From Podarcis gaigeae (lineage: Eukaryota): DNA of 64,000 nt. A program made the translations under genes and the position numbers. Below the pieces are notes generated by a model that saw only the letters and a program-made list of their open reading frames with translations, did not search any database and was not told the DNA's origin. This document shows positions 8,011 to 38,000 of the stretch, one piece after another; positions within the stretch are counted from its first letter, which is position 1, and every line of letters starts with the position of its first letter. The DNA lies in NCBI GenBank assembly GCA_964106915.2, contig OZ066928.1. One strand, 5' to 3'.

Positions 8011-9316
8011 TATAAAGGTAAAGGTACCCCTGCCCATACGGGCCAGTCATGGGAGTGTTTTCGATTATGTCTCTCTCCAAGTGTACCCATTGTTTCTTCT
8101 CATCTTCTAGAATGTATGGGATTATATGGTTGGCGATGTAGTATAGTTCTATGTTGGAGATTCCCCATGCTCCTTCTGAGGTGGGGAGGTGCAGGTGTTT
8201 GGGGCTTATTCTTGGCTTTTTGTGTGAGAAGATAAACAAGTGTTGTTTCTTCTGCCATTTGTGGAGTTGGGTTGGTGGAATCCAGATTGGAAGGGTTTGG
8301 AATAGGTAGGTTAATTTTGGAAGGGTAATCATTATGATCACGGCTATTATATCTGAGAGAGTGAAGTTAGTATTGCTCCATCTCATCAGGTCTTTGTTAA
8401 TTTGTCACCATAGGGGTTTGTAATTTGGTGGTACAGTTTTTTGTGTTTTCTGGTTATCTGTACCCCTAAGTATCTGAACTTGGTGCGGCAGACTTTTATC
8501 TTTGTGATGTTGGTGAACTCTTTTTGGATATGGAGGGAGTGTTGAAGTACATAGCCTCAGATTTTGCAAAGTTTAACCCGATACCATTGCAAATGTGCTG
8601 AGTTCTTTGGTTAAGGTGGTTGCTGTGTTGATGGGGTCTGGTGTTGTGACCATTAGGTCATCTGAAAGAGCCCTAATTTATAGGTTTTGTCTTTATTTCC
8701 ACTGCCTTGATGTCGGGCTGCCCAGATTCGGATTGCTAGAGGTTCCAGGGCCAAGATGAATAGGAAGGGGGGCAGTGGGCATCCTTGTTTCATGCACAAT
8801 GTACTACAATGTACACCCCTTATAGGTGGAGCAATGGATGCCAAAAATGACCTAAGTTAGTTTCTACAGACAAACACACTTTTTGATCCAGGCAGGCAGG
8901 CAAGAGGAACTCAATGCTACATTCCCTCAAGGAGGGGTACAGCTAGGGTGGGATTTGCTATGGTGAGAGTACCAAAGTTCAGATAGGGAGGCTTAGAAGG
9001 TTGCAGTTGAACTGGGAGCCTCAGCATTGCCAGTGATGAGGCTCTCCAAATGTCATTGGACCCCTCACCCACATCAAGCCCATTCAGCATATCCAGAAGT
9101 GATCAAGTTATAGTCCAGCAACTTCTGGAGGCCCACAGGTTCCCCACCCCAACCCACCTAGACCCTATTATCTTCAGAGGTCCTTCTCTGCATAACCCCA
9201 CCAGATGCAGTCCAGTGGGTAGCTTATTGAGGTGGAGCATTTTCAGTGTTGGCACTCATTCTATGGGATACCTAGTTATACAAATAAATGATAACTTTGT
9301 TTTCTTGAAAGCTTAC

Positions 9317-16687: not shown

Positions 16688-17411
16688 CCTGAGAGCATAA
16701 AGCAGCAAGGATGCTGATCACTTCCCACAAGGGAGCTTGAGTGCTGCTGGGCCTCTCCTTGGGGGACTGACTTCATTCACCATCTCCAACGGCTATTGTT
16801 AGCCAAGGCACAAAAAATAAAAGGTGGGAAAAGATGTTATTCCTCCCCACCCTTCCCCACCCTGTTTTCTCCTTCCCCCTTTACATAGGTGGGGATTTGA
16901 CTTCCTGCTGCTGCCCAGTTTCCATCCCACCTTGTGCTTCAGTTGGTGGTTGAGCCATTAAGCATATGTGGATCATATGAAGAGTCACAATGGGATCAGT
17001 GTCACAATTCTCTACCTCCCCTAATCTCCTCCCCTTTAGTGAATTGCTTTGCACAGGTGGGAAGGAGAGGGACTCAAAGAAACAACAGAGAGGTGGGTCA
17101 ACTATTATGATAGCTTTCCATGTTCAAAAATCCTAGTGGGAGATATTTAGGCCCATCCTCATCCTTGCAGTCACCTAAGGCAAAGGTTCTCAAACAGTGG
17201 TCCACAAACCACCAGTGGCTTGTGAGCTCTGCTCAGGTGGTCCATGGAAAATCTGTGGAGTAGTCAATGATATGTTACTTTAGCACTGTGCCTGATTTTA
17301 CTTCTTCAAGATTAAGATAAGGGATGCCAGAGAATTCTGAAAGAAACAGAAACGGGAGCGGAAATTGCTGTTGTTTGTTTTACTTAATTACTTGTTTTTA
17401 TCCTGCATTTT

Positions 17412-17761
17412 GGGATTCGGGTGGCGCTGTGGTCTAAACCACAGAGCCTAGGACTTGCTGATCAGAAGGTTGGCAGTTCAAATCCCCGCAACGGGGTGAG
17501 CTCCCATTGCTTGGTCCCTGCTCCTGCCAACCTAGCAGTTCGAAAGCACATCAAAGTGCAAGTAGATAAATTCCAGCGGGAATGTAAATGGCGTTTCTGT
17601 GCGCTGCTTTGGTTCACCAGAAGCGGCTTAGTCATGCTGGCCACATGACCCAGAAGCTGTCTGCGGACAAATGCCGGCTCCATCGGCCAGTAAAGCGAAA
17701 TGAGTGCCGCAACCCCAGAGTCCGCGACTGGAGCTATTGGTCGGGAGTCCCTTTACCTTTA
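17412..17761 (+). mobile_element. Sauria SINE (second subfamily)
   Basis: A/B boxes, an ACCTTT tail and an imperfect TSD TTTAT(C/T)CTGCATTTT. Confidence 0.88.
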
Positions 17762-18400
17762 TTCTGCATTTTATTCTGTATACTGCCCTGAGATCTTATT
17801 ATGAAGGGAGAGTTAGAAAATGCCCTGGGGTATCGGCAGCCCCCCCCCCCATTCCTCCAGCTGTCCTTCGGTGAACATGGTTCTGGAAAAGCTACTGCCT
17901 TCTACTCCAGATGCTCCAGCGACACACATCATAATGATTTATGCACACTAATCTCCTGACTTTGTATAGTAATAAGCAGGAGACACCGTAGAACTAATCT
18001 ACTATTTATTTACAGACTATACACAGAGAAATGCATAATGGTTACCGTTCTCTTCAGCTCTGAGAACAAACGGGGACTGTAAAAGCAAAAGCACAGTTAT
18101 AAAAGAACATATGCAGCTGGAAGAGATAAGACTGTTTCTTCCTGTTCTCACATGCTCTCAAGATAGTCATGTGAATTGTACCAATTACAAAATGCAGCTT
18201 CGCTGGACTGATTTACTAACAGGGAGATATACAAATTTAATAAAATAAAATAGGACCAAGGGGTCCGTGGATTAAGAATTCCACAGGACATAGAATTTCC
18301 CTTGACTGTGTCTAAAGTAGCTTTTTGGCTTCTGCCAACTTAAAACATAATTCTGTTCTGACAGGCAAGTGCTTGCAGTTTTTCAGATCATGGTGCCTTT

Positions 18401-19966
18401 CATTCACAGTAGTCTGTTTTGGGTGGGTAGCTGTATGTAAGCTTTACTCCCCATTCTACTAGAGAACTACAGAACCCTTACTCCTGCCCTAAATATTTAG
18501 CTTCTTTATCACCTTGCCCACCATTTTTTCTCTTTTGCCAATTATTTTTATTGATATTCCATAATTTTAAACAAATTGTCACGAAATTAATACAAATTCA
18601 ATATAAATTTAAAAGTTGTCTTTCTACCCACCCCATATGTCCCCTCTATTTTCCTTCCTCATTTGCTGCTCTCAATAATATAACTTTCCCAACTATCATT
18701 TCATTCATCCCTTCTCCCTACACATCACCTGTTCAGTTACCAATTTCTGTTATAGCTTTTATACATTGTTATAACATGTCTTCAAAATAGTCAAGTAGAA
18801 TAAATCCTCTTCTATCTATCTCTAATAGCCATTCATCAATTTTCAAACATTTCCTTCTGATACATCTTGAGTAACACTTTGCCTGGGGGGGGGGGAAACA
18901 GACCTTGCTTCCTCACTGACAACATACACATATTCCTCCTTAATCTGGCCTTGAACATTGCTATCGGACATGTGGCCCCAGTAATGAACAACTCAGCCTC
19001 TGGCCCCCGTAGTTAACAACTCAGCCTCACGGGTGCAGTATGCAGAGAGTGAAAACGAAACCTCTAGAAACTTTTTGGTTTATATAATAGACATTCTCCC
19101 CCTCTAACGCTGCCAGTCTCCCAGCGTCACCAACCCTTCACATTTCGCCATATTTCATCCTCAATTTGACACACAAGTTCATTAATAAAGAAACACAATC
19201 CATATCTCTTCTTTTTTGTCTGAAATTCTCAAAAGCCGTCAACACACTGTGGTCCATCCTGTCCCGTTCACTGTTCTTATTTCCAACTTCAAGCTTCAGA
19301 GAGGGAGGCTGGTGTAATATTCAACAAAATCCCTGTCTCCTCTCCATCCTCCCCCTCCCCAACTAATTAATTTTCCTGCAGTCCATCTTTCCAATCCTCA
19401 GTTCCATTAGTCCTTAGTTATAAAATAAATGCAATGCAAGGAGTATCTTTAAAGTCCACTCTTCCCAAAAACTTTGCATTCCATTGCTTTAGGGGAGGGT
19501 AGATAACGCAGATCCCCCCCCCAAAAAAACCCATTACTTACAACATTGACTTCCTTTCCCCTCCAGCATAAATCAGGACCTATTTAGCAGGTTGCCTCTT
19601 CACTTGCCAATTATGTCCTAATTCAAAGGTATTCCAGAGTTTACCATGGTAGCTTGCTGGGGCTGTCCTTGGACGCAGCAATTAAGCCCAGCGCCCTTAC
19701 CTTTTCATCTAGGAGATGGGGATTTCCATCCCCGCTCACACACAAAAAAAAGTATTAACGGACGACCGTGGATTGTGTCCTTTCGATACCCTCAAAATGT
19801 TAGGGGAGACATGCCCCTTACCCAGTGCTTTTTTTCTAAAAAATAATAATAATGTTTAGCGATACTCTCATTTTCCTACACATATTGAAATATTGCCCCT
19901 CAATGAGGTCAAACTTAGATTCACAAAATGTTTAGGGATATGCGTCCCCCCAGAAAAAAATCACTG
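18401..19966 (-). repeat. Left arm of the ~1.55 kb inverted repeat (partner 33422-35040)
   Basis: Near-continuous reverse-complement match to the right arm. The arm is a composite of an L1-like 3' tail, unique-looking DNA and a terminal CAGTG...CACTG MITE (19823-19966). The outer boundary is approximate. Confidence 0.92.
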
Positions 19967-20035
19967 AATATAGCATTGTTGATTTATTTTGTATGCTATA
20001 AAAGAGCTATTAGAGGATGTGTTTTATATATTGAG

Positions 20036-20038
<3 letters not shown>

Positions 20039-20079
<41 letters not shown>
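20039..20079. repeat. (GA)n microsatellite
   Basis: Read directly from the sequence. Confidence 0.95.
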
Positions 20080-20083
<4 letters not shown>

Positions 20084-20395
20084 TGGAATATAAAACTAAA
20101 ACTCCAGGACAATGTTCAATGTTCATATATTATTTTCACTCATACAATTTGATCTCCTGCTCAAAATAGAATAGTAACCAAGGATAGCTATTAAGTTATG
20201 TAGTGCTCCTTAAACCACCATTGATGTGTGGTATTATGGAATTGTATATATATATTTATAAATATTTTATTTCTTTTGTAATTTCTAAAAATAAAAAAAT
20301 GGATCCAAATAGGTTTACCTTAGAAAAGTTAATTAGTAATTGCTTACAAGAAGGCTGCTGTAAAACAAGTTCAAACTCCAGGACCTTTGGTCTGC

Positions 20396-20402
20396 TATAA
20401 GG
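20396..20402 (+). promoter_or_regulatory. Candidate TATA box of the EGF-TM gene
   Basis: CTATAAGG lies about 105 nt upstream of the ATG. Confidence 0.5.
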
Positions 20403-20503
20403 AGAAAGAACAAGAACAAGAAATCAAAAGTGAAGGAGAATCGCAGATGGGCAGGAGAGTCCCAGAGAAGAGGATTAACTCTTGTTCTAAACAGCATCCC
20501 ACC

Positions 20504-20579
20504 ATGCTAACCTCTGGTGCTCTCTTCCTTCTCCTGGCCGTGTTGTCCAAGAGTTGGCTGACGACGGAAGCTGCAGATC
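20504..20579 (+). CDS. EGF-TM protein exon 1, signal peptide (MLTSGALFLLLAVLSKSWLTTEAAD)
   Basis: Kozak-like ACCATG, a hydrophobic core, and a phase-1 donor C|GTAAGA. Confidence 0.8.
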
Positions 20580-20708
20580 GTAAGAAACATTTGGGGCTGG
20601 TTATAGATGAGACCTAGTTGAACAAGATCCTCCTAGGTGCAAAATGCAATCCTGACTGATCCCCCTCACTTAGCAACAGTTTCCAGAGTTTCCTGGGAAA
20701 AGCGATTA

Positions 20709-21229
20709 CCGTATTTTTTGCCCTATAGGATGCACTTTCCCCCCCTCCAAAAATGAAGGGGAAATGTGGGTGCATCCTATGGGGCAAATACAGGCTTTTG
20801 CTGAAGCCTGGAGAGCGAGAGGCTCTTGCTCTCCAGGCTTCAGGAAGCTCTGCGCAACTGTGTCGGCCTCCAGAGGGTCGTGCAGAGCTGCCTGCCCTGC
20901 CGGGCTCTGCGCAGATCTGTGCGACCCTTCGGAGCCCGGCGCCAAGCTGCGCCGGGCTCCGGAAGGTTGCGCAGAGCTGCCTGCATTAGGAATCCTCAGC
21001 GCGCCCGGGCTTCGCACAGCTGTCCGCAAGCCTGGGGAGACCGGCGCGGCTGCCTAGGCTTGCGGATAGCAGGCTCTTCTGAGGGCTGGGGTCGGGGGAA
21101 GCTCGGGCTTCCCCCGCGCCAGCCCCGTGCCTGGGGGGGGAAATAATTTTTTTTCTTTATTTCCCCCCTCCCCAAAAAAACCTAGGTGTGTCCTATAGGG
21201 CGGTGCGTCCTATGGGGCGTAAAATACAG
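20709..21229. mobile_element. pogo/Tc2-like non-autonomous DNA transposon with a GC-rich interior
   Basis: TA-flanked TIRs CCGTATTTTT.GCCCTATAGGA.GCAC. Retained CpGs suggest a young insertion. Confidence 0.8.
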
Positions 21230-21337
21230 TAGTTGTTAAACTGCTCTGGGAATTGTAACTTTGTAAATAGATAAGAGTCTTCCTCGGCACCAATAACCAA
21301 CTACAGTTCTCAGGGTTCTTTGGGGGAGGGCATGACT

Positions 21338-21616
21338 GGGAGCGAGTGTGGTGTAGTGGTTAAGAGTGGTGGACTTGTAATCTGGGGAACCGGGTTCGTG
21401 TCCCCGCTCCTCCACTTGCAGCTGCTGGGTGATCTTGGGCCAGCCACACTTCTCTGAAGTCTTTCAGCCTCACTCACCTCACAGAGTGTTTGATGTGGGG
21501 GAGGAAGGGAAAGGAGAATGTTAGTCGCTTTGAGACTCCTTTGGGTAGTGATAAAGCGGGATATCAAATCCAAACTCCTCTTCTTCTTCTTCTTCTTCTT
21601 CTTCTTCTTCTTCTTC
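21338..21616 (+). mobile_element. tRNA-derived SINE (Squam3-like) with a (CTT)n tail
   Basis: TGGTGTAGTGG A-box and GGTTCG B-box; an inverted copy lies at 29104-29345. Confidence 0.8.
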
Positions 21617-23359
21617 AAGTGGTATAACACTGCTTTAGAAAATGTGGTGCACATGGGGCCTGAACTTAAGGAGTCCAATATTAATCTGCATTAAGTTAGG
21701 TTATGATTTCAGGGCAGGGCTGGGGAACTGTGCAACCCTTCAAAGGATGCTGGACTGCATCTCCCAATATCCTAGACTATTGGCCATTCTGGCTGGACGT
21801 GATGAAAATCCAGCAACGTATGAAAGGGGGACAAGTTCTCCGCCCCTGGACTTGGGGTACATCCCATTGAGCACAATGGGACTTACTTCTGGAGAAATAT
21901 GGGTAGAATTGTGCCGTCAGGCAGGGGTAGGGATGACAGACGTAGATAAGGGTGTACTGGAAGATCTCTAGATGGTGTGCAAAAGATCAACCAGGGCTTC
22001 CTCTAGACATCTGTTTGGTCACTTGTGGGGAAAAGGATACTGGACTAGGTAAGTATTTGGCTTCATCCAGCTGGAATCATCTTATGTTCTTATGTTTTTC
22101 TGACTAGCAATAGCAACAGTTAGAAAGCTTCCTAAACCAGGTTGCTGAAAGAGAACATTCAAAGGAAAAGCAGGAGTTGGCTTTTATTTGAAAGGATCTC
22201 CCAGCCCTCCCTGGACATGCCAGCGGGAACTGGACCTGGGACTTTCTACATGTAAAGCAGAGGCTCTACCAGTGAGCCATGGCTCTTCCCCTAATAACCC
22301 TAGGAAGGGAGGTACTTTAAAGTTTTCCATTAGCATCTCGAGGACAGAAAGAACAGCACTCAGGTTACCTGATCATAGTCTTCTCTGCATTAGTCATAAG
22401 TTTACATCCATACATATAAAATAGCACACAGAGATGTCATGCAGTTCTGTGTCCTCTTTTATGATAATGTGTTAATGGTCACCCTATCAACAACAGTGGT
22501 CCCTGCCAGTAATTCCGGAGGTGGATGATGATGATAATTATTAACCAGATGCAAAGGAGGTCACAGGCTTCTGATCTGCTCTCAGGTGTTTACTGGTATA
22601 CGTTTTCTCATATGCTATAGATACATCTCTTTACCTTGGCCTGTTCTTAACCCCACCCCCTATTCTTCTGATTGTAATTTGTTTTAACTGGTTTAAAATC
22701 TTTTTGTGTGGTTGTACCTCACCCTCACACCTTATGGTGTAGGTCAGGCAAATAGTAATAGTAGTAGTAGTAATAATAATAATAATAATAAACAAAAACA
22801 GAACAACAGAAGTAATTTTAGGAGGTACACCTTTGTGTATCTTTGCATCAGAGTAGTGCAAATGCACTGGCAGGAGTGTTGGATCAGCTCTGCAGGCAAG
22901 TTTTCACTGTACCAGCCTCCCTGTTGTCTCGTCCCTCCCAGCAAGCAGCAGAGACCTACCTTTCCAGAGTGATGTGGTTGCATATGGCAGCAGACCACCC
23001 TAGGTGGTTTTACTGGGATTAGTCCGGTTAAAATGAATGGATATGACTACCTGAAAGTTAGGTTATTTTAATTTCAGCAGGTCTGCTCTGAATAAAAGTT
23101 AAATACCACCCATAGTTTCTCAGTTTAGATGAAATAGGTATTGTTAATTAGAGGCTCTCTGGTTTAATTGTGGCTCGTATGAAGCAGGGAGCAAAGGTGC
23201 TTCGTGCATCGGGGCAGGTGTGTTTGTTTATATCAAATAATAATAATACGTAATAATGATAAATAATAAAGCAGGATGAAATGTTGGTGGTCCTATATAA
23301 ATCCACCACTAATGCACTGTTCTTGCACCGGTGGCATGTTGAATACCCGTTTCTGCTTC

Positions 23360-24200
23360 TTTGGCAATCACTTGTAGCCAAGTAAGATTGTCTTTCATGA
23401 ACACGGTCTTAACAGTGAGTCTGTAAGTGACTGTGGAGGCCAATTCTGGATCCACACATTCTTCCACAGTGGGGACCTAGGTTTCTGGTCAGGAGTTGAT
23501 CACAGTGTGGATTTGCCAAGTGTGCCTTCCTCTTGGCACATTTTCTCCTTTGCGTCCTGAGTTCATGCTTCTTCAAAGTCTATGACACCTTTGGTGAAGG
23601 CTGTTCTCCATTGGAGCACTCGCAGAGTTCCCAGTTATCTTTTGTTGTCCACTGGTATTTTGCTTTCCATTCTTAAGTTGGGAATATAGTAGTTGCTTTG
23701 GAAGATGATAATCAGGCACCAGAACAACATGACCAGTCTAACAAAGTTGATGTTGAAGAATCATTGCTTTGACACTGGTAATCTTTGCTTCATCCAGTAC
23801 ACTGGCATTAGTTCATCTGTCTTCCCAAGTGATCTGTAAAAAATTTCAGATGGAATCTTTCAAGGAGCTGGAGATGGCATTTATAAAAGGTTCATGTTTC
23901 ACAAGTGTACAGTAAAGTTGGTAGCACAATGGCTTGTTACTAGCATTTTGGTTTCCCTCTGAATGTCCTAGTCCTCAAACACTCTGCACTTCTATCAGGA
24001 GAAAGCTGTGCTTCTCGGAGCTCAGGCGATGCTGGATTTTGGCATCAATGTTGGCTTTTGTGGAAAGATAACTGCCTAGGTAGGAAAAGTGGTCAACTTT
24101 TTCCAACGTTACACCATTAAGTTGGAATCGTGGTGTTGCAGAGGGGTTGTTTTGTGCTTGTTGGTGCAGCACTTTGGGATTTTTTTGGATATTGAGCGAT
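23360..24200 (-). mobile_element. RTE-clade LINE 3' fragment
   Basis: Peptide NGVTLEKVDHFSYLGSYLS..NIDAKIQHRLS, frameshifted. Confidence 0.78.
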
Positions 24201-24369
24201 AGGCCAAGTGGCATGTTGAATAGCCCTGCAAAACAACTCAGGTCTGCAAGGCCCCTGAGACAAAGCAGCACTTCATTAGAATATGCTCACAAATTATCTC
24301 TATGGGTATCTTAAATTATGGTCAATATGACATTGCTATGCAGCTCAACTCTCTCCCCACTGTTTTCAG

Positions 24370-24475
24370 CCAATTGTTCCGGTGTGGCTGACCTTGATGA
24401 TTGTCCAGGCAGTACAAGCGATTTCTGCCCAGAAGGAGTTGCCTGTGGTTGTAAAGATCAATTTCCCTTTTGCAA
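24370..24475 (+). CDS. EGF-TM protein exon 2 (PNCSGVADLDDCPGSTSDFCPEGVACGCKDQFPFCK)
   Basis: Acceptor ctgttttcag, donor AA|GTAAGT, six Cys in an EGF-like spacing. Confidence 0.88.
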
Positions 24476-25387
24476 GTAAGTTACTTTCCTTCCTTTTAGG
24501 GTTTGGTTGAGCTTTGTGGGGAAAGACAATGGTTGGGCACCTGACCTCCCTCTGTCCACCTCACTGCTGTATATTATGACAGGGGTGTCAGGGAGAGAGA
24601 GGCTTGTAGCAAGGATGACATGGAATAGATGTGCAGCAGCTGAATTAGCTTTATTCCATTGCCTCTCCATCCTGTTATGCAGCATCAGTGCAGCCAGAAG
24701 GAGGTCAGATGAGTGGTGCAGCCCCACTGCACCAACTGCCATGTCTACACAGGCACCATGTGCTTAAGCCATGGGTAGGGAACTTTTTCAACCCAAGCCA
24801 CATTCCCCCAGAGGCAACTTTCAGGGGGTCGCATGCCAGTGGAGAAAGAAGCCAGATTCCACAGTCAGTGGGGCCATGGATATGACTTACCTTTCTTCAG
24901 TAGGCAACACCCCAGCTGTGTAAATGTCAGAGGCTGCGACATTCCCCACATTTCCACTACTCTCTATCCAAGCATGCAAAAGGCACTGTCCTAGGCTCCA
25001 ACCAGGCATAAGAAGCCAAGAAGGGTGTGGTCTGTCCCAACTTCTGCCAACCTAGCAGTTTGAAAGCACACCAGTGCAAATAGATAAATAGGTACCACTG
25101 TGGCAGGAAGGTAAAGAGCGTTTCCTTGGACTCTGGCACTCATCACGGTCCTTCATGTGCCAGTAGCGCTTTAGTCATACTGGCCCCATGGCCCCTGCAA
25201 GCAGTCCGTGGACAAACAAGTTCCATTGTGAGGAAAACAGCAAGGTTAAAAATTGCAGCCCTGCCCAATTTGACCGCACGTCACTGGATAGCACCCCAGC
25301 ACAAAAGCATTGCGATGGGTTGTAATCATACTATTAGGGGGTTGACGCAAACTGTTTTGATGTTGCTTTGCTTGATTCCATCCACAG

Positions 25388-25579
25388 GTGCCCTTCCTAT
25401 CAAAATGGCTGGAAAAATTACTGGTACATGGGTGTCAAATGCGAGGAGCTTTGGAGCACTTTGGACTTGATTTTAGTTGTGGTTTTCCCTGCAGTGGCTC
25501 TGTCTTTTGCAGCTGCTGTCACAACACAGTGGGTCCGGTATTGCAAGGACAAGCCAGAGAAAGAAGCCAAGCGAAACCG
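25388..25579 (+). CDS. EGF-TM protein exon 3: end of the EGF module plus TM helix (CPSYQNGWKNYWYMGVKCEELWSTLDLILVVVFPAVALSFAAAVTTQWVRYCKDKPEKEAKRNR)
   Basis: Acceptor tccacag, donor CG|GTGAGT. Contains the Y-x-G-x-x-C-E EGF terminus, a hydrophobic stretch and a basic stop-transfer segment. Confidence 0.9.
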
Positions 25580-25731
25580 GTGAGTCAGTATGTATTGCAG
25601 CCTTGTAGGCTGCAAATCTATGCACACTTACCTAGTTTGATCCCAAGTAAGAATCAAGGAGAAATTAGGTGCTGTTTGTATTTTAATGGAGAGCAATGGA
25701 CTTCACACTTCTTGAACTGAAATATGAATTT

Positions 25732-25940
25732 CTCTCGCTTGGACTACTGCAATGCGCTCTATGTGGGGCTACCTTTGAAGGTGACCCGGAAACTACAACT
25801 AATCCAGAATGCGGCAGCTAGACTGGTGACTGGGGGCGGCCGCTGAGACCACATAACACCAGTCTTGAAAGACCTACATTGGCTCCCAGTATGTTTCCGA
25901 GCACAATTCAAAGTGTTGGTGCTGACCTTTAAAGCCCTAT
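25732..25940 (+). mobile_element. L2-clade LINE ORF2 fragment
   Basis: [32 protein letters not shown]...LKDLHWLPV. Confidence 0.85.
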
Positions 25941-26379
25941 GGCAATCGTAATAGGTGTTGAAATTTTGGGAGGTTGGATAGTTACAAGGGAATGGTCTCA
26001 GGTGTGGGGTGCACATTTTATTTATTCTTATTACTTTGTTTTTTTAAAAAGGAGGAAGTGTAAGTGGTGGTACGTCACCTGCCCCACTGTTTCCACTGGT
26101 GCCAGAATGCCCTCCTCTCACCTGTGCACAGCTGCTGTACAAAGAAGACAAGTGACAATGCTTAGACGAACACCCCACTGAGAAAGGAGTGGGTATTCTG
26201 GCAGTGGTAGAAGTGGGGGCAGGGCACAGCACATTCCCATTTTGCCTCAGGTGGTGAAACGGGGCAGGCTGTTCCTGTTCTCACCCCTCCTCGCCAGCAG
26301 TGTACTAAATTTCTATATGTATGTGGAAGGAAGGAAGGAATCGAGGGCTCACATTCTTTTGACTCTTATATATTTTCAG

Positions 26380-26482
26380 TACTCAGGCAAGGCAGCTGAG
26401 ACCTGAACCACAGCATCATTCAGAATATGCTCCTAAACTGGCCAATAGGTTGAGATCCGCCTCTTATTCACAAGGAAGACAG
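26380..26482 (+). CDS. EGF-TM protein exon 4, cytoplasmic (TQARQLRPEPQHHSEYAPKLANRLRSASYSQGRQ)
   Basis: Acceptor tattttcag, donor CAG|GTAAAA, phase 2->0 fits. Confidence 0.75.
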
Positions 26483-28196
26483 GTAAAATATTTTGTTTGT
26501 TTATTTGTTTGTTTGTTTGTTTGTTTGCTTGTTTGCTTGCTTGCTTGCTTATTATGGACTTGGAATTTAATTGTGGTAAAAGGGGTGCTTTTTTTAATCC
26601 AGTGGATGGCATTGTTTATTTTTGAAATGCCCCGGGGTTTTGCATTATTTTTTGTATATGAGGGAAATAGCTGGCAGCCTTTTCTGAAAGGCGTTCTTCC
26701 CGTATCCACTCTGCAATTGACATTTACAATGGATGTCTGATATGTAAGATGAGATTAGGGCATTTGCATTAGCTGACATCAAATGGACTTCGTTTGCTTA
26801 GAAGCTGCAATATGATTGTCCTCCTTTATCCCAACCAGGCCTAGAAGACTCCTGGTGGGGTCAGAGGAGGAATCTGCAGCAACAAATAGCTGCTGCAGTG
26901 CCAAGAGTCCAGTTCAAGTTTTGTTACTCTTTGCAGTCAATGGCCATTACAACATAAGCATAAAACACATATATGGGGGGAGGATTATTCATCGCATAAA
27001 ACAGATAAACCCCAATAATACAAATAAATAGCATTTAAAGCATGGATTTCATTCAAAACTTCCCTTAACATTTAGCACTGATCTGAAAGGTGCCTCTAAC
27101 GGGATAAAGCTATCCTGCAGCTAATTAACTTGTTTACATCAGGCAGCAGACATCTTATTTAGAAAATGTCTCGTTTGCCTTCTAAGAAGGTCTAAAAGGC
27201 TAGAAGAAATGTCACACCTGGTAGGTATTGTAAAGGACAAAAGAATAAAGTGCAGCAAAAAAAAAAAATCTTATTAGAAAATCTGCCAGCCAAATATGCT
27301 ATAGGGGTAGTTTGGGAGCTAAGCTGGAAGTGTGCCTGACAAGGAAATAAGTTCAGTTCTGCAGATAGGTGGCCCTTCTATGGTTTGGTATCATACAGTT
27401 TTTTTTAGAACCACAACCACAACAACAACACCTTGTGCTCAATGCAGGAAATCCTTAGCTAGAGCATCACTGACCAATGGTTGTACAGCCCCTGCTTGAA
27501 TACCTCCAGTAAGGGACACTGGTAACTGGTCCCACAGTCAAACAGCTCTTACCACTTCTATTTCTTCTGTGGGAGAGAAAGCCACTGATTCTTTCATTCA
27601 TTCCTATACAGTAAGGATGGAGAACCTATAGTCCATCAGATGCTGTGCTACAACTAATATTATCTTTGACCGTCACCTGGCTGGGGCCAAAAGGAGTTAG
27701 GAGCTGCAGGTTCTCCACTCCCGATATACAGCTAAGGAACAGAAACTTTAATCATTTATGTGTAGAATGATGGCAGTATTTTCTGAGTTTTTGAAATAAG
27801 AAATATAGGGAGGACAAGGTACAATAACCAGGTTTGTTTTTAACTCTATCATGATGTGTTTGCAACTGGTCTTTATTTCACTCTGATTTTCTCTTCCTGT
27901 ATACCAACCTTCATCAACTTGGTGCCCTTCAGATATTTTTTAGGCTATATTGTAACTCCCATCTGCCTCAGTCAGCATGGGTCCCATATCTTGACGGCAT
28001 ACGGTTGATGAAGGCTGGTGAGTAATAGTAGACATATTATCTTATTATTTGTCTTCAGTATTTTGGGGATTGCATATTTGTTTTTAAGGGTTGCATCTTT
28101 ATCATCTATTTTTTCATAATAAACATTTTAAAATAACAAAACAGAAGTCAATTTGTCGCTTAATTCCCCCTTCTTTTTTTCTCTTTCTTGGTATAG

Positions 28197-28276
28197 GATA
28201 ATATTAAATTTCCCAAGTACAATCTCCAAAGTTACCCTCATGAACAAATACAGACACCATATGCTGGAGACTACAG
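28197..28276 (+). CDS. EGF-TM protein exon 5 (DNIKFPKYNLQSYPHEQIQTPYAGDYS)
   Basis: Long polypyrimidine tract then TAG, donor AG|GTATGA, phase 0->2. Confidence 0.78.
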
Positions 28277-29103
28277 GTATGATGTCCTTTGGTCAAACTT
28301 TTTCACAATGATGATATATTTTTCCTGCTAGAAGATAAATTGTGCACACTGCTCGGCAATGATGGAAATCATTATATATTTTCAAATGTAAAATGATCTT
28401 GAACTGTTCTGAAATTTGCCCTCCATTTACTTGAAAGCTTTCTTCTCCTGAGGAAGAAGAGTCCATTGTTCTGCATCATTTTCAAGGCATTTTAGAATTT
28501 GTATGGACCTGGAGTTTAGAACATGCCTTATAGTTGTCACGTAGTCTCATATTTTCTGTTTGTTTTTCTTACCAATAAACATTTATCCAGTTGCCTGCAA
28601 CCTTCCCAGCTGTTCAGGCCATATAACCTCCTCCCAGGCCACACCTCTCACTGGCCTTGTTTTGTACCTTCCTTAAGTGTTTTTGCCTGGACAGAGGATA
28701 TAGGTGTGTGTGTATATAGAAACTAGCTTACTGCACAAAGGCAAAATTTATATGCATCAATTTTTGCCTCCACTACCATGAGGCTCATGGAAGTTTGCCC
28801 AGAAGGCATTGTGGGCCTTGAGATTAAAAGGTTTCCCACTCCTGCTATAGGAGCTGCTTGCCTATCTCATCTCTATGTACAGAAAACCTGCAAAAGACAG
28901 AGTCCTCGGCTGCATGTTCATTCTATGTTCAGACCTTTGTATGAATGAGTGTAGGTCAGAAGCTGTGGTGGTGCCTGTGATCTGCAGGAGCTCATATGAC
29001 GCAACTAGGAAAAGGGATGAAGAAGGAAACAAGCAAACTGAGACAGAAGTTCATTCGCAGTTTTCTATAATGACCAGTTTGTAATGAAGGATCCGCTTAA
29101 GGG

Positions 29104-29345
29104 AGAAGAAGAGTTTGGATTTGATATCCCGCTTTATCACTACCCGAAGGAGTCTCAAAGCGGCTAACATTCTCCTTTCCCTTCCTCCCCCACAACAAAC
29201 ACTCTGTGAGGTGGGTGGGGCTGAGAGACTTCAAAGAAGTGCTATTAACCCAAGGTCACCCAGCAGCAGCTGCATGTGGAGGAGCGGAGACATGAACCCG
29301 CTTCACAGCTTACGATTCTGCCGCTTCTTACAACTACTATACCCC
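29104..29345 (-). mobile_element. Squam3-like SINE
   Basis: Reverse complement of 21338-21616. Confidence 0.8.
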
Positions 29346-29893
29346 ACTTACTCTTAGGAGAGGAAAAGCTAGATGGAGCTGGTGTCTCAGCTGAGCCAAC
29401 GGACTGGGCCCTGCTTCCCATCTTTCTTTTTGCTGCAGCCAGGTGGGATGCTTTGGGCTAAACTGATGCCAAAACTAAGATCCCAAAACTGAGGCCATTC
29501 ATTTTGATTCAGTGCATACAATAAGCGGTTATCATGTTGTTATGCCTAGATCTGTATTCCAGAGAAGTAGCCATGTTATTCTGTTGCAGCAAACGTAACA
29601 GAGGTGAAATCTACAAACATATTTAAAAAAACGCTGTGAAAATGCTTTTTAAAAAAATGTTTTGAAAAATACATTGAATTTGGCATAGCTCACTGCCTCA
29701 CATTTGTATATTGCACTTTACACATTTAAAATGTTTTATTTGCAGCTGTGTAGCTGAGTCCAGAGACTTGCAGCACCTTAATGGTTTACTGTGCCATATT
29801 TATCTTGAAACATAACTCTTTGTTGCATTTATCTGCCCATAAGAAATTTATATTTGCATTTTTTAAAAAAAGTGTTTAATTTGATTATTATAG

Positions 29894-30059
29894 TCAGATG
29901 CCTCACCAGCCATTGAGAAGAGCTGTTCCAAGCCAAGATGATGTATTTGTGGGTCGGTCTTTCCAAGCTGGCCAGCTTAACTCTTGGGAGAGTGAGGTGC
30001 CTGATGTGGATTATGAGGACATAAACCCATTTTCTGCTATGCCCATGCAACGATTTCCA
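29894..30059 (+). CDS. EGF-TM protein exon 6 (QMPHQPLRRAVPSQDD...EVPDVDYEDINPFSAMPMQRFP)
   Basis: Acceptor attatag, donor CCA|GTATGT, phase 2->0, open frame. Confidence 0.75.
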
Positions 30060-31495
30060 GTATGTACAAATAATCTCAGTTATACAAGGAGTGGGGGTTT
30101 TTGTTTTGTTTTTACTGGGGCAGGATTCAGAGAGAGCTCTCTGCATGAGTGGAAGGACCTCTTTCTTCAGTTTCCAGTGGGAACCTGCTACACTAGCCTT
30201 CCCTGACATGGTGCTGCCAGATGTTTTAGACTGCAACTACCACCAACCCCAGTCAGCATGGCCAATGGTTTGAGAGGATGGCAGCTGCAGCCCAAAGCAT
30301 CTGAAAAGCACCTGGTTGGGCGAGGATGCCCTACACCAGATGCCACATCATTCCCAGTCCTCAGGGGTTACTTTTCAGGGCTGCAGTAGGGAAAAGGAAC
30401 AATCCCCATCTGTAAACAGAACTCTGTTCACAATTCCCTAGATCCTACTGATAAAATTTGCACTAGGAAACTGGAAATGGAGCACATGTGAAGCCTTTGT
30501 GTATCAGGTTTACTACATAGGTGTTCAGGAAGCCTTAGGGCTTATTCAGACTTCCTTCTTTGCCATGCTTTCAGGCACAGACCCACAGTTTCCAGGTCTA
30601 TGTCCGAGCTGTGGTTTTTTTTTTGTCCCACCACTTACCCCAGAAAAGCCTGCTATTAACTGCTAAATCAGAACAAACAGCAATTGAGGTTTCTGTGGAT
30701 TGCTGTTTGTTCCGATTCAGCAGTAAAGGGTTTTTTTTTTCCATTAGGAAGCAGTGGGACAAAACAAAAGACCAGAAAATGAAACATAAAAGAAAAAACA
30801 ACTCACTGCTTAGACCTGGATTTGGAAAGAGCCCTTCGACGTAACTATGAGAGCCTGTCTGTTACATCACCCATTTCCTCTTCCTGATTCTTAGGCTGTG
30901 TGCACAACCATACATTTAAAGTGCATCCTTACCCCAACCCCACAAAGAAACCTGAGAGCTGCCATTTATTACCCAGAATTCCTACAGTTCCCAGAATTCC
31001 TGAGGGTGTGTGCGCGCCTTAAATGTATAGTGTGGATGCAGCCCCAGGGCTTAATCTTCTTCCCCACCTACCCACTCCCTTTCTTCTGTCTTATGCTGAC
31101 CAACCCCACTGCGACTCTCTGCTTCTCCATGGCTCTTTAAGAAAGTGTATCCACAGGAGTAGAAGCTGGTGGGAAAAGGGAAAAAATAATGGAACTCATG
31201 AACATGCCCAGAAGCAATTTTGGCCCTGTAGCAGGAGGAGGAGTCTGTCTAGAGCAGTCATGTGGTGTTTCTCTCCACCTGCTGCAAATTACAGTTGGTG
31301 GTAGGTGGCCCTGTGGGAAGTAGGGAAGAGAAAACAGTCTTGCTGGAACTGTAGCAAGGGCCTGGTGTTATCCTTGCCTGCTTCCCTCACAGTCCTGGAA
31401 TCCCACATGGCAGGTGGGAAGGAGGCTCTAGGAGAGGGGGCAGGGAGTCCTTCCAATGCAGCAACCAATTTTCATATTTTAACTTTCCCTTACAG

Positions 31496-31624
31496 AGACC
31501 CGGGGCATCAGTGGTACCTCGGCCTGAGCACCAGAAGTATGGTCATCAACCAGTGAATTACCTGAATGGTCAAAGAGCTGGAAGGCCCTATGGGCTCGGG
31601 CACCAGCAGGATAGATACACCTAG
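31496..31624 (+). CDS. EGF-TM protein exon 7, terminal (RPGASVVPRPEHQKYGHQPVNYLNGQRAGRPYGLGHQQDRYT*)
   Basis: Strong acceptor ttttaactttcccttacag, TAG stop, AATAAA at 31633 and 31848. Confidence 0.78.
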   Translation, partial: RPGASVVPRPEHQKYGHQPVNYLNGQRAGRPYGLGHQQDRYT

Positions 31625-31949
31625 GAACTTTTAATAAATATGGAAAACAGGTGCAACTGCAGAATCGTCCTCCATTGTTTGGTGCAGCCTCCATTGTTTG
31701 GTGCAGCCTCTCTTACCTCTACTTTTCTCCATGAGGGCTTTATCGCAAGCCACACCCAATGAATACATACCTATCAAGACGCAGCAAATATTTAATCAGC
31801 ACAGCCATTAAAATGAGAAATCTGTTTGGGCAGCATCTTTCTTATTTAATAAATGAACCTACCAATCCACCTCTTCCTGTCCAAAGCGTCTAATGTCCTG
31901 CTCTATAACATGTTGTTCTTCTAGCAATAATTGGTATTCAGTGGATCCA

Positions 31950-32170
31950 TTTTTTTCCGGTAGTGGCGCCTGCCCTGTGGAACGCCCTCCCATCAGATGT
32001 CAAGGAAATTAAAAACTGACTTTTAGAAGACTTCTGAAGGCAGCCCAGGATAGGGAAGCAGTATATGGAAGCTTTTAATGTTTGATGTCTTGCTGTGTTT
32101 TAATTTGTTGGAAGCCGCCCAGAGTGGCTGTGGTAACCCTGTCAGATGGGAGGCATGTGTATAAATAACA

Positions 32171-32213
<43 letters not shown>
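31950..32213 (+). mobile_element. L2-clade LINE 3' end with (ATT)n tail
   Basis: VVAPALWNALP motif, the conserved tail and a microsatellite. Confidence 0.8.
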
Positions 32214-32214
<1 letters not shown>

Positions 32215-33421
32215 GTTTTCTCTTTGGTATTATTGAACCTTGGATGGAGACAGGCTCAGTCACGGGGAGGGCTCCTCGGTCATTTTAGAACGTTCTGCAA
32301 ATTTCCCCCACAACGTGTACTTGTGTCTGTAAAACAGGGGTTGCCAGACTTTAAAAGCCTTTGGTCACATATGGATTTCTGAACAAATGATGTGGGTCCT
32401 ACTCTCTCTGGGCACTTTTATTCTCTTAGATCAACCCCCATCCTGTAAGGAAAGTACACTTAAAATTAGTTTATGCACATGCATAAGTAGATAGATGATA
32501 CAGATATAGATAGAAGTATAGATATGCTGTATGTGTAGGGGGACAGTGGGCACAGGAGACAGGTTTACACTGGGGTGGAATATTTTTTAGCAGAGCTGTG
32601 AAGTCCAGCCACTTTTATTTATTTATTATTATGGGGGGCTGGGACACACACAATTCTGTTCAGACACCCTGGGAAGTTGGAGGGGAGCCTTGAAGTAGCC
32701 ACAATTGTGGATGGTGCTCAGCATCTCTGTCTGTCAAAACCACCCAGGCTGCAGGCTGCTGCAAAGAGCTCTGAAAGGGCCTTTCCAGCTCCCAGTCACG
32801 CAAATGCTTGTTTTCTGCAAGAGTGAGATATGGTGGGGGCAGCCGGCCATTTTCTGTTGTGCCTCAGGCAGCAAAATGCATTGGGCCTGCCCTGGTCCTG
32901 AATCTGCCCTTTCCTGGCTGGCAGAGAATGCACTGGACAAAATATCAATAAAGGAAAAGGGAAAGTGCAATCGAAGAAATAGGCAGTAGATGCATGATGG
33001 AGTGATTACAGATGTAAGAAGAATTTAATGTGATTTGATATAAGATTTTCTATTGTTATTTTTGAATGAATTTTTCTTTGTTTTTTAATTTCAATATAAC
33101 ATTATTTATATATAAGAATCTCACTCAGTTCAATGGGATACACTCCCAAGAAAGGTGCACTGGATTGCATCTTTAATTCCAGAGGTACTATTGTTGTTGA
33201 CTGTCATTTATCTTGTGAGTTCAAAAGGCCTTATAAAAATCTAAAATTATCCAAGTGCCAACCTTTGCTTACATTTCATAGAAAATATTTTGTTCACTAA
33301 ATAAACTGGTTGAGAAACAATGGTGGGGCACATCCTGCTTTGCAGCGAAATTGGCAAGTCACCCTCTCAGGCACTCCAACACCTGAGAGGGGTCCCAGAT
33401 GGAAATTATTGGGGGTAAGGC

Positions 33422-35040
33422 CAGTGAGTTTATTTGGTGGTGGTGCAGAGGGACGCATACCCCTATACATTTTGTGAATCTAAGTTTGGCCTCATTGAGG
33501 GGCAGTATTTCAATATGAGTTGGAAAATGAGAGTATCCCTAAACATTTTTTTAAAGAAAGAAAGCACTGGGTAAGGGGCATGTCTCCCCTAACATTTTAG
33601 GGTATCAAAAGGTCACAATCCACAGTCGTCCATTAATGCTTTTTTTTGTGTGTGAGCAGGGATGGAAATCCCTGTCTCCTAGATGAAAAGGTAAGGGCGC
33701 TGGGCTTAATTGCTGCGTCCAAGGACAGCCCCAGCAAGCTACCATGGTAAACTCTGGAATACCTTTGAATTAGGACATAATTGGCAAGTGAAGAGGGAAC
33801 CTGCTAAAAAGATCCTGATTTATGCTGGAGTAAAAAATCATCAGTTTGGAAAGGCTTGAAAAGAATGAAAGATGCTAATTTCTGCTTTGCTTGAATGGTG
33901 TAAGGAGGGGAAAGGAAGTCAATGTTGTAGGTAAAGGGTTTTTTTGGGGGGGGGATCTGCGTTATCTACCCTCCCCTAAAGCAATGGAATGCAAAGTTTT
34001 GGGGATGAGTGGACTTTAAAGATACCTCCTTGCATTGCATTTATTTCATAACTAAGGACTAATGGAACTGAGGATTGGCAGGATGGACTGCAGGAAAATT
34101 AATTAGTTGGGGAGGGTGGAGAGGAGACAGGGATTTTGTTGAGATTACACCACCTCCCTCTCTGAAGCTTGAAGCTGGAAATAAGAACAGTGAACGGGAC
34201 AGGATGGACCACAGTGTGTTGACGGCTTTTGAGAATTTCAGACAAAAAAGAAGAGATATGGATTGTGTTTCTTTATTAATGAACTTGTTGCGTGTCAAAT
34301 TGAGGATGAAATATGGCGAAATGTGAAGGGTTGGTGACGCTGGGAGACTGGCAGCGTTAGAGGGGGAGAATGTCTATTATATAAACCAAAAAGTTTCTAG
34401 AGGTTTCGTTTTCACTCTCTGCATACTGCACCCGTGAGGCTGAGTTGTTCATTACTGGGGCCAGATGTCCGATAGCAATGTTCAAGGCCAGATTAAGGAG
34501 GAATATGTGTATGTCGTCAGTGAGGAAGCAAGGTCTGTTCCCCCCCCCCCAGGCAAAATGTTACTCAAGATGTATCAGAAGGAAATGTTTGAAAATTGAT
34601 GAATGGCTATTACAGATAGATAGAAGAGGATTTATTCTACTTGACTATTTTGAAGACATGTTATAACAATGTATAAAAGCTATAACAGAAATTGGTAACT
34701 GAACATGTGATGTGTAGGGAGAAGGGATGAATGAAATGATAGTTTGAAAAGTTATGTTATTGAAAGCAGCAAATGACGGAAGAAAATAGAGGGGACATAT
34801 GGGGTGGGTAGAAAGACAAGTTTTAAATTTATATTGAATTTGTATTAATTTCGTGACAATCTGTTAAAAATTATGGAATATCAATAAAAATAATTGGCAA
34901 AAGAGAAAAAATGGTGGGCAAGGTGATAAAGAAGCTAAATATTTAGGGCAGGAGGATTCTGTAGTTCCCTAGTAGAATAGTAGAATGGGGACTAAAGCTT
35001 ACCTACAGCCACCCACCCGAAATAGAATGTAACTGAAATG
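33422..35040 (+). repeat. Right arm of the ~1.55 kb inverted repeat (partner 18401-19966)
   Basis: Reverse complement of the left arm with substitutions and indels, including about 70 extra bp near 33830-33903. The outer boundary is approximate. Confidence 0.92.
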
Positions 35041-38000
35041 AATTACTTGGCTTATTAATATCCCAAGATTAATGGAAATGATACAAAATAGAATCATATA
35101 ATTTACATGCAAAATTGAAAAATATAAAATTGAATGGATAGAAATTGATACAAAATGGGGTAAAGGATAATATTATTAATTAGGTAGTAGCTGGATATGA
35201 TTGGCAAATGAATTTTAAAGTAGCATTGACAAAGCCACTAAAGTAAACGAAATAACTCCTATCTCCCTCCAGCCCATCTGGTTGTGAAATAATTCTAAGC
35301 ATATTACAGCAATATTAGGCTGCCCTGACCTCAGGAACTTTTGTGCCAAGTTTGAAAATTGGAAATATTTAAGGAAAATTATGGTCCACTTGAGAAATCA
35401 TGCATCAAATATATGGTCCCCTTGTAAAACGAAAAATAGATACTGCATACTTTCCAACAAGGTACCTTGACGCCAGAAACAGGAATGTGCGTCTTCGCAG
35501 CCCTGATCCTCCACAAGTCAGATTATCTGTGTGGGATCACTGAGCCAGAAAACATGTGTTTTGGGGCAAAACTCACAAGATCGCAACCTCACACAAAATT
35601 ACAATGCTCAAAAAAGCACATTTCTGGGCTCTCTGATTTTGCATCAAATCACAATCTTGCATGTTTTGCCCCAAAATGTGTGTTTTCAGGCTCCATGGTC
35701 TCACATGAGGTCCGAACCGCACACATTGTTGAGTAGCATGCTGAAAGTACAGCATCAAAAAATTGAATGCCCGGCTTAGATTGGAACAGTTGATGGGTAT
35801 GGATACTGTACTTGAATTGTCTTTGACAACATGGATTAAGACTAGTGCTCATTCTACAGTTTGAGTTATGGTGGCTTTTAGACAACAAGAGAGAATGTAA
35901 CCCATGATCTCAGACTCTTGAGAAGAGGCATCCAGTATATGGGCCCTCCCATATAAACAGATGGAAGAGAATCAAGCCTTGTAGCCACATTCTGAATGTC
36001 TTCTAATTTGGTTTCCAAATGTTTCAACTGAAACTGGGTTTGTGAATACAGGGTGATTTTTCATACCCTTTGATCTACTTCAATGAAATACGGCCTAAGG
36101 CAGACCCAAATATTGTGCCTACTTCACAGGAATTTGCAGGTTCAGTTGCAATAAAATATTGCCATATCTTCCAACATTCCTCAGATGAAAATAGGGACAT
36201 TTTTCACTCTCCCCAACGTACCCTCCTCAATCTCTTGTTTATTGCTCCGCACCCCCAAGCATTTCCCATCAGAAGAAAGGTGAATGCCACAGTCATTACA
36301 CCAGTGGGACACGGCACACACGTGCCCGGCAAAAACACCTTAATCCAGACTTTACAAAATGAGAAGCATGCACCATTTATTATTATTTTTAGAAAGGGGC
36401 ACCCCACTCCCCCTTTCTCCCACCTAGGGCAGCCCTCCCTCTGCCTGCCTCTCAGAATGACCAATACAATACAATGAATGACCAATACGAATGAAACTGG
36501 GAAAAGAGGACATCCTTGTCTTGTACCTTGGGCTAGTGTTATTTGTTCTGTTATTTGTTCTCCTCCTCCACTCTCCAGTAGCTGCTATGAGCTGCCCAAG
36601 GAAGGAAGCCAGCAGTGGCCATGGAGAGGCAACAAGGTGCTCCCTCACTGCTGCTGCCATCGCTGTTGCTTGGGAGAAGCACCAAATCATCCTCCTCCCC
36701 GATCTTGGTGGCAGTATCACTGGTGGGAGAAACAAGGACATTCCAGGATCAAAACAGAAGCCAAGATGGCTTCCAGAATTCTGGGATTGACCCTGGAAAA
36801 TTGGGACACTTGAAGGGTATGAGATATGCTATTAAGACAAATGGGTTACAAGGCCTGGAAGCTAATAAAGGATCAGTTTGCCCAGTGCTTGGTCAACCAG
36901 TAGAAGCAGTTTGGAAAGGTCCATTGGGATTACATTGTTTGCAATGGGGATAGGATTGATCTGAATATTTTGCAAAATGCAACAAGCACTTTGTTAGATA
37001 TCAGGCTGAATGTACTCTGTATAATTTAAGACCAATCCCGCTTCCAGAACTGGGCTTTTGGCAATATAGTCATAAGTGAGACTGGGCACCAGTGGCTCCA
37101 AGACCCTGGATCCGGTAATTTATTTCGTTTTCATGGTGTTCAATCTTTGATTTTTACCTTTATCTTCACCTTGTAAAATGTGTTCATTTGAAAGCTTTAA
37201 GGTTGTTTGTATTTTGATGCAGACTTTCTGATACTAAATGTTTCAGAGAGTAGTTATGTTCTTTTGTGTTGCTCAATGAATATGGATGAGACAATTTGAT
37301 CCAATAGGTTGTGCTATCCATAGACCTTAGCCTAACAGGTTATCAGGGCTGTTAATCCCAGGCCCTGCTGGACCTCCATATGCATCACAACCAGCAGTTA
37401 AGGTGTATTTTATGCACACGGGAGATGAGCCATGGTGGATCAATATGGATTATGCTATGCCAGTCTGTGTCTTTCCTGTGAAAGCTGCTTGGATCCGTGA
37501 ACACTTTTGCTGCTTCTGATAAAAAGCTCATGAAGAGCTTGGCAGTGCAGCTTGATTAGCGTGGTGGGAAAGCGTACGTGTAACCCAAACAACGTGGGGG
37601 TATAACGCTTCTTGCAAGCGAACTCTGCAAGTTTCACAAAGATTATTGCGTGGGGGGACTGCTTATACAACCAGGTTGCCCTTAGCTCATTCATATGGGT
37701 TTTATGTTGGTCCACCCCTATGAATAGAGCAACTGGTGGGAAGGTCCAACCCTCCTGCTCCGCCTGCTCAACAGTTAAAAAGCAACCCAGCTCTTGCGCT
37801 CTTCCTTTAACTTTTTTGGAGCGAAGGAGGTAACATCACTGTATTTTTCTTTCTTCTTGCTGATATCTGCCTTGCTTTGAGTCCGTTGCCTGTGGTAAGG
37901 ACAGGGCCTGGACTACGTTCGGTAAGTGAATTTTTACTGCTCTAATATGCTAGGAACTTCAAATTATTTCACAACTAGATTTGCTGCAGGTGTAGGAGTT

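Follow-up and report, generated by a model that had tools for sequence, protein, structure and literature searches.

An inverted repeat around the EGF-TM gene of Podarcis lizards, probably grown from a pair of transposon copies

Inverted low-copy repeats that surround genes are a basis of recurrent inversion and of genome instability, and to our knowledge the first birth of such a repeat is rarely visible. The window studied here, a stretch of 64,000 nucleotides (nt) from contig OZ066928.1 of the lizard Podarcis gaigeae (assembly GCA_964106915.2), contains an inverted repeat whose two arms enclose the whole of a gene termed EGF-TM, as an earlier note made from the letters of this stretch had claimed. 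The left arm is located at 18410–19966 (1557 nt, plus strand) and the right arm at 33422–35030 (1609 nt, minus strand), with a spacer of 13,455 nt between them (19967–33421, plus strand). Within the spacer, the gene is read on the plus strand from the ATG of exon 1 at 20505, where a signal peptide is encoded, through an exon carrying the first part of a split EGF module (24370–24475) and a third exon with the rest of the module and a transmembrane stretch (25388–25581), to a polyA signal at 31633. The same note had reported no other gene in the spacer, and a second gene was likewise not found in a partial check, in which Pfam searches of the larger open reading frames (ORFs) were blank. The locus was compared with the EGF-TM gene and its 10-kb flanks in five further lacertids, with one assembly per species: P. 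muralis (locus L001), P. raffonei (L002), P. lilfordi (L003), Zootoca vivipara (L004) and Lacerta agilis (L005). Upstream of the gene, an acetyltransferase (SATL1-like) gene occurs on the minus strand in the fetched loci. A gene of ZFX/ZNF711 type, for which Pfam gives Zfx_Zfy_act and C2H2 finger domains, follows downstream on the plus strand; it was observed in the window and in P. lilfordi alone.

Each arm is composed of an outer body and an inner miniature inverted-repeat transposable element (MITE). The left arm has its body at 18410–19814 (plus strand) and its MITE at 19823–19966, while in the right arm the MITE lies at 33422–33569 and the body at 33570–35030 (both on the minus strand). 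A repeat search and self-BLAST revealed one inverted pair in the window, at approximately 18413–19948 against 35026–33450, and no third copy of the arm within its 64 kb. The exact arm limits were fixed at the MITE termini and the arms were then globally aligned, giving 57 substitutions over 1507 aligned columns (96.2% identity; Kimura two-parameter distance 0.039) and 14 insertion or deletion (indel) events. A match of 1.5 kb at 96% cannot be due to chance. Identity varies along the arms, from 89–91% in the outermost 100 columns at each end to 98–100% in the centre. Two length differences between the arms that the earlier note had described could be placed precisely. The left-only tandem duplication is a diverged repeat of 28 nt at 18987–19014 (plus strand), which is also present in a related organism (organism B, described below) and absent from a right-type contig of the same species. 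The right-only segment of about 70 bp measures 77 nt (33831–33907, minus strand). It occurs in the right arms of Zootoca, P. muralis and P. lilfordi, and neither the Podarcis left arms nor the converted right arm of P. raffonei contain it. The comparison with other species shows the difference to be a loss from the left arm, flanked by a CTCC repeat, and not an insertion in the right.

Any repeat carries a general risk of being mis-joined or echoed during assembly, and short-read contigs from public runs bear on this point. The contigs containing this stretch come from seven coded organisms, and four runs were compared over 17000–21300. In run X15, from the same species, a single-copy contig spans the left outer junction with 0 differences (record 3), and other contigs carry exactly the right-type differences (records 5 and 7); as this run may share its sample with the window assembly, it tests the assembly method and not a second individual. 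In organism B (run X2), which is approximately 1% diverged, the same left junction, the 28-nt duplication and the left-type arm lacking the 77 nt were all recovered, together with a right-type contig (records 10, 13, 14 and 15). With both arm types and the left outer junction present in independent contigs of two species, the same structure in three other Podarcis assemblies, and 57 sites and 14 indels separating the arms, the chance that the repeat is an assembly artefact is negligible, and the view that it is not a simple assembly echo holds.

The innermost part of each arm has a transposon origin. Both elements show features of hAT-superfamily MITEs, namely short terminal inverted repeats and 8-bp target-site duplications at two independent sites. 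The left element (144 nt, plus strand) ends in CAGTG...CACTG, with a terminal inverted repeat matching at 14 of 15 positions, and the right element measures 148 nt. Elements of this family are non-coding and 144–152 nt in size, and in four species their contig depth adds up to about 20,000 times that of single-copy DNA; in the window this very high-copy stretch corresponds to 19736–20023, and the short-read contigs break in the MITE. The right MITE is found in its original insertion context, between GGTAAGGC (33414–33421, plus strand), which is the outer half of its target-site duplication and matches 33570–33577 at seven of eight positions, and GGTAAGGG; it occupies the same place in Zootoca, where the inner duplication is intact. 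Orthologues of the left MITE have been located in Zootoca (L004 8537–8684), between its own 8-bp duplication GATATAGC and AATGTAGC, and in L. agilis (L005 9339–9485), between TATATAGC and AATATAGC, with no arm body adjoining in either species. In the window, the spacer side of the left MITE retains AATATAGC (19967–19974, plus strand), the surviving half of its own duplication, and the opposite side carries CCCTTACC (19815–19822, plus strand). The latter is the reverse complement of GGTAAGGG and is a copy of the right MITE's duplication that came along with the body, a junction which is the same in the left arms of all four Podarcis. Since the left and right copies have different 8-bp duplications of their own, the two MITEs are independent, old insertions. 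They belong to one hAT-type family, lie in opposite orientation about 13 kb apart, and were inserted before the split between Podarcis and Zootoca, with the EGF-TM gene already resident between the two sites. In P. muralis, a SINE-like sequence (short interspersed element) of 370 nt occurs at the outer duplication of the right MITE (L001 22216–22585).

When the arm sequence was counted by short-read contig depth, as had been proposed, the body was found at 10–55 times single copy, with at least 12 contigs at 18750. Part of it (18440–18870) is an old, moderately repeated sequence, represented by at least 12 other contigs per genome at 85% identity or more. These values bear on an explanation that would have undone the earlier note's reading, in which each arm is an independent insertion of a single 1.55-kb transposable element. 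For the innermost 144–148 nt this is what occurred, as these are two insertions of a high-copy MITE. It does not extend to the 1.4-kb body, which lacks both a duplication and a terminal structure of its own. Along the arm, copy number jumps from about 10 to 55 to 20,000 times single copy, and because of these sharp changes the arm is to be seen as a mosaic. Moreover, in Zootoca the right copy forms an ancestral, uninterrupted part of the locus, the left copy finishes at a microhomology join where 140 nt of target were lost, and both arms share derived bases relative to other copies of the family (for example at 18750, 18781 and 18800). A twice-inserted element is therefore very improbable as the source of the whole arm.

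Comparison of the orthologous loci shows when and on which side the repeat arose. All five other loci are collinear with 12–40 kb of the window and run in the same orientation, the only minus-strand matches being those of arm against arm. The long repeat is present in all four Podarcis genomes, with an arm identity of 96.2% in the window, 96.5% in P. muralis, 99.3% in P. raffonei and 96.3% in P. lilfordi. It was not found in the Zootoca and L. agilis loci, where the left body of the window matches solely at the right-arm position, on the minus strand, and is absent from the left. In both of these species the SATL1-like gene is on the minus strand, EGF-TM is on the plus strand and the downstream DNA is collinear. 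In Zootoca the right side is contiguous from spacer through MITE and body to flank, and the outer part of the right body is likewise contiguous with its flank in L. agilis. Because of this contiguity in Zootoca, the right side is the parental copy, and the left body a derived, inverted copy of the DNA adjoining the right MITE. Several lineage-specific changes were also observed at these loci. The L. agilis locus has neither a right MITE nor the innermost 640 nt of the body on that side (L005 25088–28472), and about 3 kb of other sequence, with a 300-nt palindrome (28141–28446), stands in their place. P. lilfordi has an insertion of 4.9 kb between the spacer and the right MITE (L003 29494–34394), and P. 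muralis one of 488 nt inside the left arm (L001 7895–8383).

The same comparison disposes of the proposal that the repeat is a scar left when the gene was placed or inverted. Such scars are known from Drosophila, where staggered breaks duplicate one breakpoint in inverted orientation; inverted duplications occur at 17 of 29 inversions, and the size (1.6–1.9 kb) and geometry of the lizard repeat resemble them (PMC1885836). The likeness extends to the duplicates themselves, which are inverted, consist of DNA that was formerly unique, reach about 1.9 kb and flank a segment on both sides (PMC1885836). In Drosophila, however, the segment between the duplicates is inverted (PMC1885836), whereas the lizard spacer runs the same way as in the outgroups without the repeat. 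Zootoca, Lacerta and other squamates have the gene and its neighbours in place, and the intact duplication of the right MITE shows that the right inner junction is ancestral. As the gene was in place before the repeat formed, and as gene order and orientation agree with those of Zootoca and L. agilis, where no long repeat exists, the scar proposal is refuted, and we consider it to have next to no probability.

In the ancestor of Podarcis, approximately 1.8 kb of unique DNA adjoining the right MITE was copied, in inverted orientation, onto the outer terminus of the left MITE, replacing about 140 nt of the old left flank. The lost flank is still found beside the MITE in Zootoca (L004, approximately 8395–8536) and is gone from every Podarcis. 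All four Podarcis left arms share the same join, comprising the right-type duplication CCCTTACC, a left-type MITE and AATATAGC, as well as the 77-nt deletion, and since both are shared, a single origin in the Podarcis common ancestor is the history to which they point. P. muralis has the least eroded copy. There the left arm extends 309 nt further out, matching the reverse complement of 35031–35339 in the window, a former outer extension of the repeat which is now single-copy in the window (minus strand); this extension is retained at L001 7198–7498 with 93.9% identity, and about 120–140 nt of it are left in P. raffonei and P. lilfordi. At the outer junction in P. muralis, ancestral left flank gives way to right-flank sequence at an AGT(G/T)CCT microhomology (alignment A1). 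At the inner side, the left MITE has left-type bases up to the first few nucleotides of its outer terminus, and right-flank DNA begins exactly at the end of the MITE.

Because the left MITE keeps its left-type bases right to the outer terminus, a three-step break repair can be proposed. A double-strand break would have occurred at or beside this terminus, after which strand invasion of the inverted right MITE by the MITE end may have primed synthesis of about 1.8 kb out into the flank, and the new strand would then have been joined to the resected other end at a microhomology of 3–7 nt. An event of this kind would belong to one-ended synthesis-dependent or break-induced repair, completed by end joining. 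A different route to the same arrangement is delivery of the left body by aberrant hAT transposition, as a composite insertion or by Pack-type capture in which the MITE terminus acted together with a surrogate end. One border is indeed exactly a MITE terminus, and in maize, alternative transposition of Ac yields composite insertions as well as inverted duplications, with element ends at their borders (10.1101/2020.01.07.897926). As in the maize Ac/Ds products, the inverted duplication takes in flanking host DNA and is bordered exactly by a hAT end, but those products carry 8-bp duplications and two element termini, neither of which is seen at the lizard locus (10.1101/2020.01.07.897926). The composite is not flanked by an 8-bp duplication, its outer junction was joined at a microhomology with a target deletion of 140 nt, and no second hAT-like terminus occurs at the outer end, even in the least eroded P. 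muralis. The border MITE was, furthermore, already resident in the outgroups and so did not arrive with the insert. These observations leave aberrant transposition with a small share of the probability.

The proposed repair has counterparts in other systems. A templated copy of nearby DNA, a junction with a few bases of microhomology and a small deletion are shared with microhomology-mediated break-induced replication and template switching (PMC2621351), although one lizard end appears to have used about 148 nt of real homology, provided by the MITEs. In the 'ebb and flow' of the plastid inverted repeat, as described by Goulding et al. (1996) in the account given in PMC2275221, one copy serves to repair a break in the other, with synthesis past the old boundary, and contractions occur as well. 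Going by that account, the boundaries of the lizard repeat would have shifted in a similar way, by overrun of repair synthesis and by contraction; unlike the plastid repeat, which resides in an organelle with constant copy correction, the lizard locus is nuclear, was seeded by a MITE pair and has microhomology joins at its far ends. These two, the shifts of the plastid repeat boundary (PMC2275221) and microhomology-mediated templated repair (PMC2621351), are the closest mechanistic parallels.

The repeat has subsequently been both trimmed and extended. The present outer edge of the left arm in the window is a deletion junction (18409–18410), where P. muralis has about 845 nt more (L001 6662–7506), of which 537 nt are ancestral flank and 309 nt extend the arm. 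This segment was lost in the lineage of the window's species and organism B, thereby setting the edge at 18409|18410. A separate deletion at this edge, smaller with about 245 nt, is common to P. raffonei and P. lilfordi. The deletion in the window's lineage also accounts for contigs of organisms E and F (about 2.2% diverged), in which the flank fits the window to 18409 and is unlike it thereafter (records 20 and 29). From the same two organisms, a left-type arm contig begins at 18426 and has three differences where the left and right arms differ at 16 sites (record 30). A reading in which E and F lack the left arm, the arm being perhaps an independent insertion of recent date, was dropped when the assemblies showed a longer left arm there and a deletion in the window's lineage. 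Extension is visible in P. raffonei, whose right arm (L002 25218–27098) contains two MITEs, one of right type and, 97 nt further out, one of left type accompanied by 115 nt of left-spacer DNA. This inserted DNA includes a (GA)n run and rejoins the arm at a TCCA microhomology (alignment A2). It represents a second extension through the same kind of event, in the opposite direction and on the inner side.

Exchange between the arms has continued in parallel. A substitution-free tract of 285 aligned columns (18973–19285, plus strand) has a permutation P of 3.1e-4 and is read as recent gene conversion from arm to arm. Because the same stretch differs in other species (for instance at 19109, 19236 and 19241), it cannot be attributed simply to constraint. 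In a maximum-likelihood tree, left arms are paired with right arms by species, with support of 96/99 in the window, 95/95 in P. muralis and 100/100 in P. raffonei. Differences between arms within a species amount to 1.2–3.3%, against 4.0–5.8% between orthologous arms, and derived sites common to both arms of one species number 22, against six arm-type sites. Judged from these sequence patterns, the arms evolve in concert and have exchanged sequence by gene conversion in every lineage, which shows that they interact physically. In P. raffonei, the identity of 99.3% over 1.6 kb suggests a very recent conversion of the whole arm. The right MITE of P. muralis (L001 22586–22740) has left-type diagnostic bases, and conversion appears to have passed there from the body into the MITE.

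The earlier note had put the arms forward as a substrate for recurrent inversion, through which non-allelic homologous recombination would toggle the orientation of the gene cassette. The first half of this idea stands: two inverted paralogous copies lie on one chromosome and exchange sequence, so that they are a conceivable substrate. The arms are 96–99% identical with perfect tracts of 157–307 nt (158 nt at most in the window and 198, 307 and 157 nt in the other Podarcis), and they clearly recombine without crossover. Human repeats of such a kind often toggle (PMC3961182), and in about half of the comparisons between species the spacers of primate X palindromes lie in different orientations (PMC8327919). 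The flipping itself is unsupported. The orientation check in other species that the note had called for gave the same result in five other lacertid assemblies, with no opposite spacer orientation among six lacertid references, and all four repeat-bearing Podarcis keep the ancestral orientation of Zootoca and Lacerta. The arms are also short, their longest perfect tract of 158 nt in the window contrasting with 11.3 kb at >99% identity in FLNA-EMD (10.1101/2020.04.20.051185). Inversion of the intact gene by crossover between the arms is thus possible but unsupported, and recurrent toggling is unlikely.

Repeats that are known to toggle have far longer and more similar arms (PMC3961182; 10.1101/2020.04.20.051185; PMC8327919). 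At the human FLNA-EMD inversion HsInv0389, arms of 11.3 kb with >99% identity are found in both orientations (PMC3961182; 10.1101/2020.04.20.051185). As in the lizard, inverted low-copy repeats bracket complete genes and exchange sequence, and a crossover would flip the genes intact; the lizard arms, by contrast, measure 1.6 kb at 96% and occur in one orientation in six references. Primate X palindromes have arms of >8 kb and >99% identity, with spacers that have often been inverted or replaced between species (PMC8327919). They share with the lizard locus concerted arms, genes in the spacer and structural change concentrated at the boundaries between arm and spacer, and differ in that the lizard spacer is stable and its arms are small.

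Taken together, these results make it probable that this is a Podarcis-specific inverted low-copy repeat which grew from a pair of transposon copies. Several points weigh against this history. The copying event is reconstructed and was not observed, and an initiating break fits transposase cutting, replication-fork collapse and other causes alike. Since arms cluster by species, the single origin leans on shared junctions and one shared indel and not on the tree. The 99.3% arm identity of P. raffonei could be inflated by assembly collapse, each species is represented by a single assembly, and the MITEs are classed as putative hAT-type elements by their termini and 8-bp duplications alone.

More tentatively, nuclear inverted repeats may in general arise from inverted MITE pairs and grow stepwise, a transposase cut at the terminus being repaired off the partner with synthesis into the flank; two such steps would have occurred here within one genus, with deletions between them. 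This generalisation is possible, though we think it rather less probable than not. If true, it would imply a nuclear 'ebb and flow' like that of the plastid repeat, with active hAT MITEs building inversion-prone architecture around squamate genes. The repeat itself is an ordinary feature with an unusually traceable history. Related lizards have kept every stage: the seeding MITEs with their own duplications, the homology-primed copy of about 1.8 kb, the trimming, the second extension and the concerted evolution. The locus offers a clean natural example for models of segmental duplications that start at transposon copies, as well as a concrete place at which the inversion rate of a 1.6-kb, 96% repeat can be measured. 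The repeat has no demonstrated function, and nothing suggests a consequence for the EGF-TM gene.

The EGF-TM gene belongs to a more widespread family. Its exons were described singly and exon 3 alone served as the query, which led to a family of proteins of about 250–300 amino acids, whose Rhineura member led in turn to a lacertid cluster. Orthologues of about 302 amino acids carry the annotation 'uncharacterized protein LOC...' in P. muralis, P. raffonei, Zootoca and L. agilis, and homologues also occur in other squamates, turtles and salamanders. The king cobra homologue, with 254 amino acids, bears the unchecked source label 'Meprin A subunit beta'. Pfam gave no domain for the ORFs of the spacer and arms, its sole matches being the ZNF711-like exons; Rfam and tRNA scans of the window returned nothing, and ten small ORFs near the junctions had no exact match in the collection that was consulted.

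Other repeats were observed in and around the spacer. An extremely high-copy element occurs outside the left arm at 17412–17762, with a summed contig depth of up to about 600,000 times single copy. Just past exon 1, a second such element at 20600–20890, in which a 46-nt palindrome lies (20798–20846), reaches about 20,000 times single copy. A (GA)n microsatellite lies 60 nt inside the left MITE (20025–20088), where every short-read contig breaks; its position is kept across Podarcis, Zootoca and Lacerta, with a (TA)n run before it there. A Sauria-type SINE at 21340–21580 identifies the genome as that of a lizard. Two such SINEs, at 21345–21584 and 29104–29348, lie in opposite orientation in EGF-TM introns and are 85–90% alike, and the same opposed intronic pair is present in P. 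muralis and P. lilfordi.

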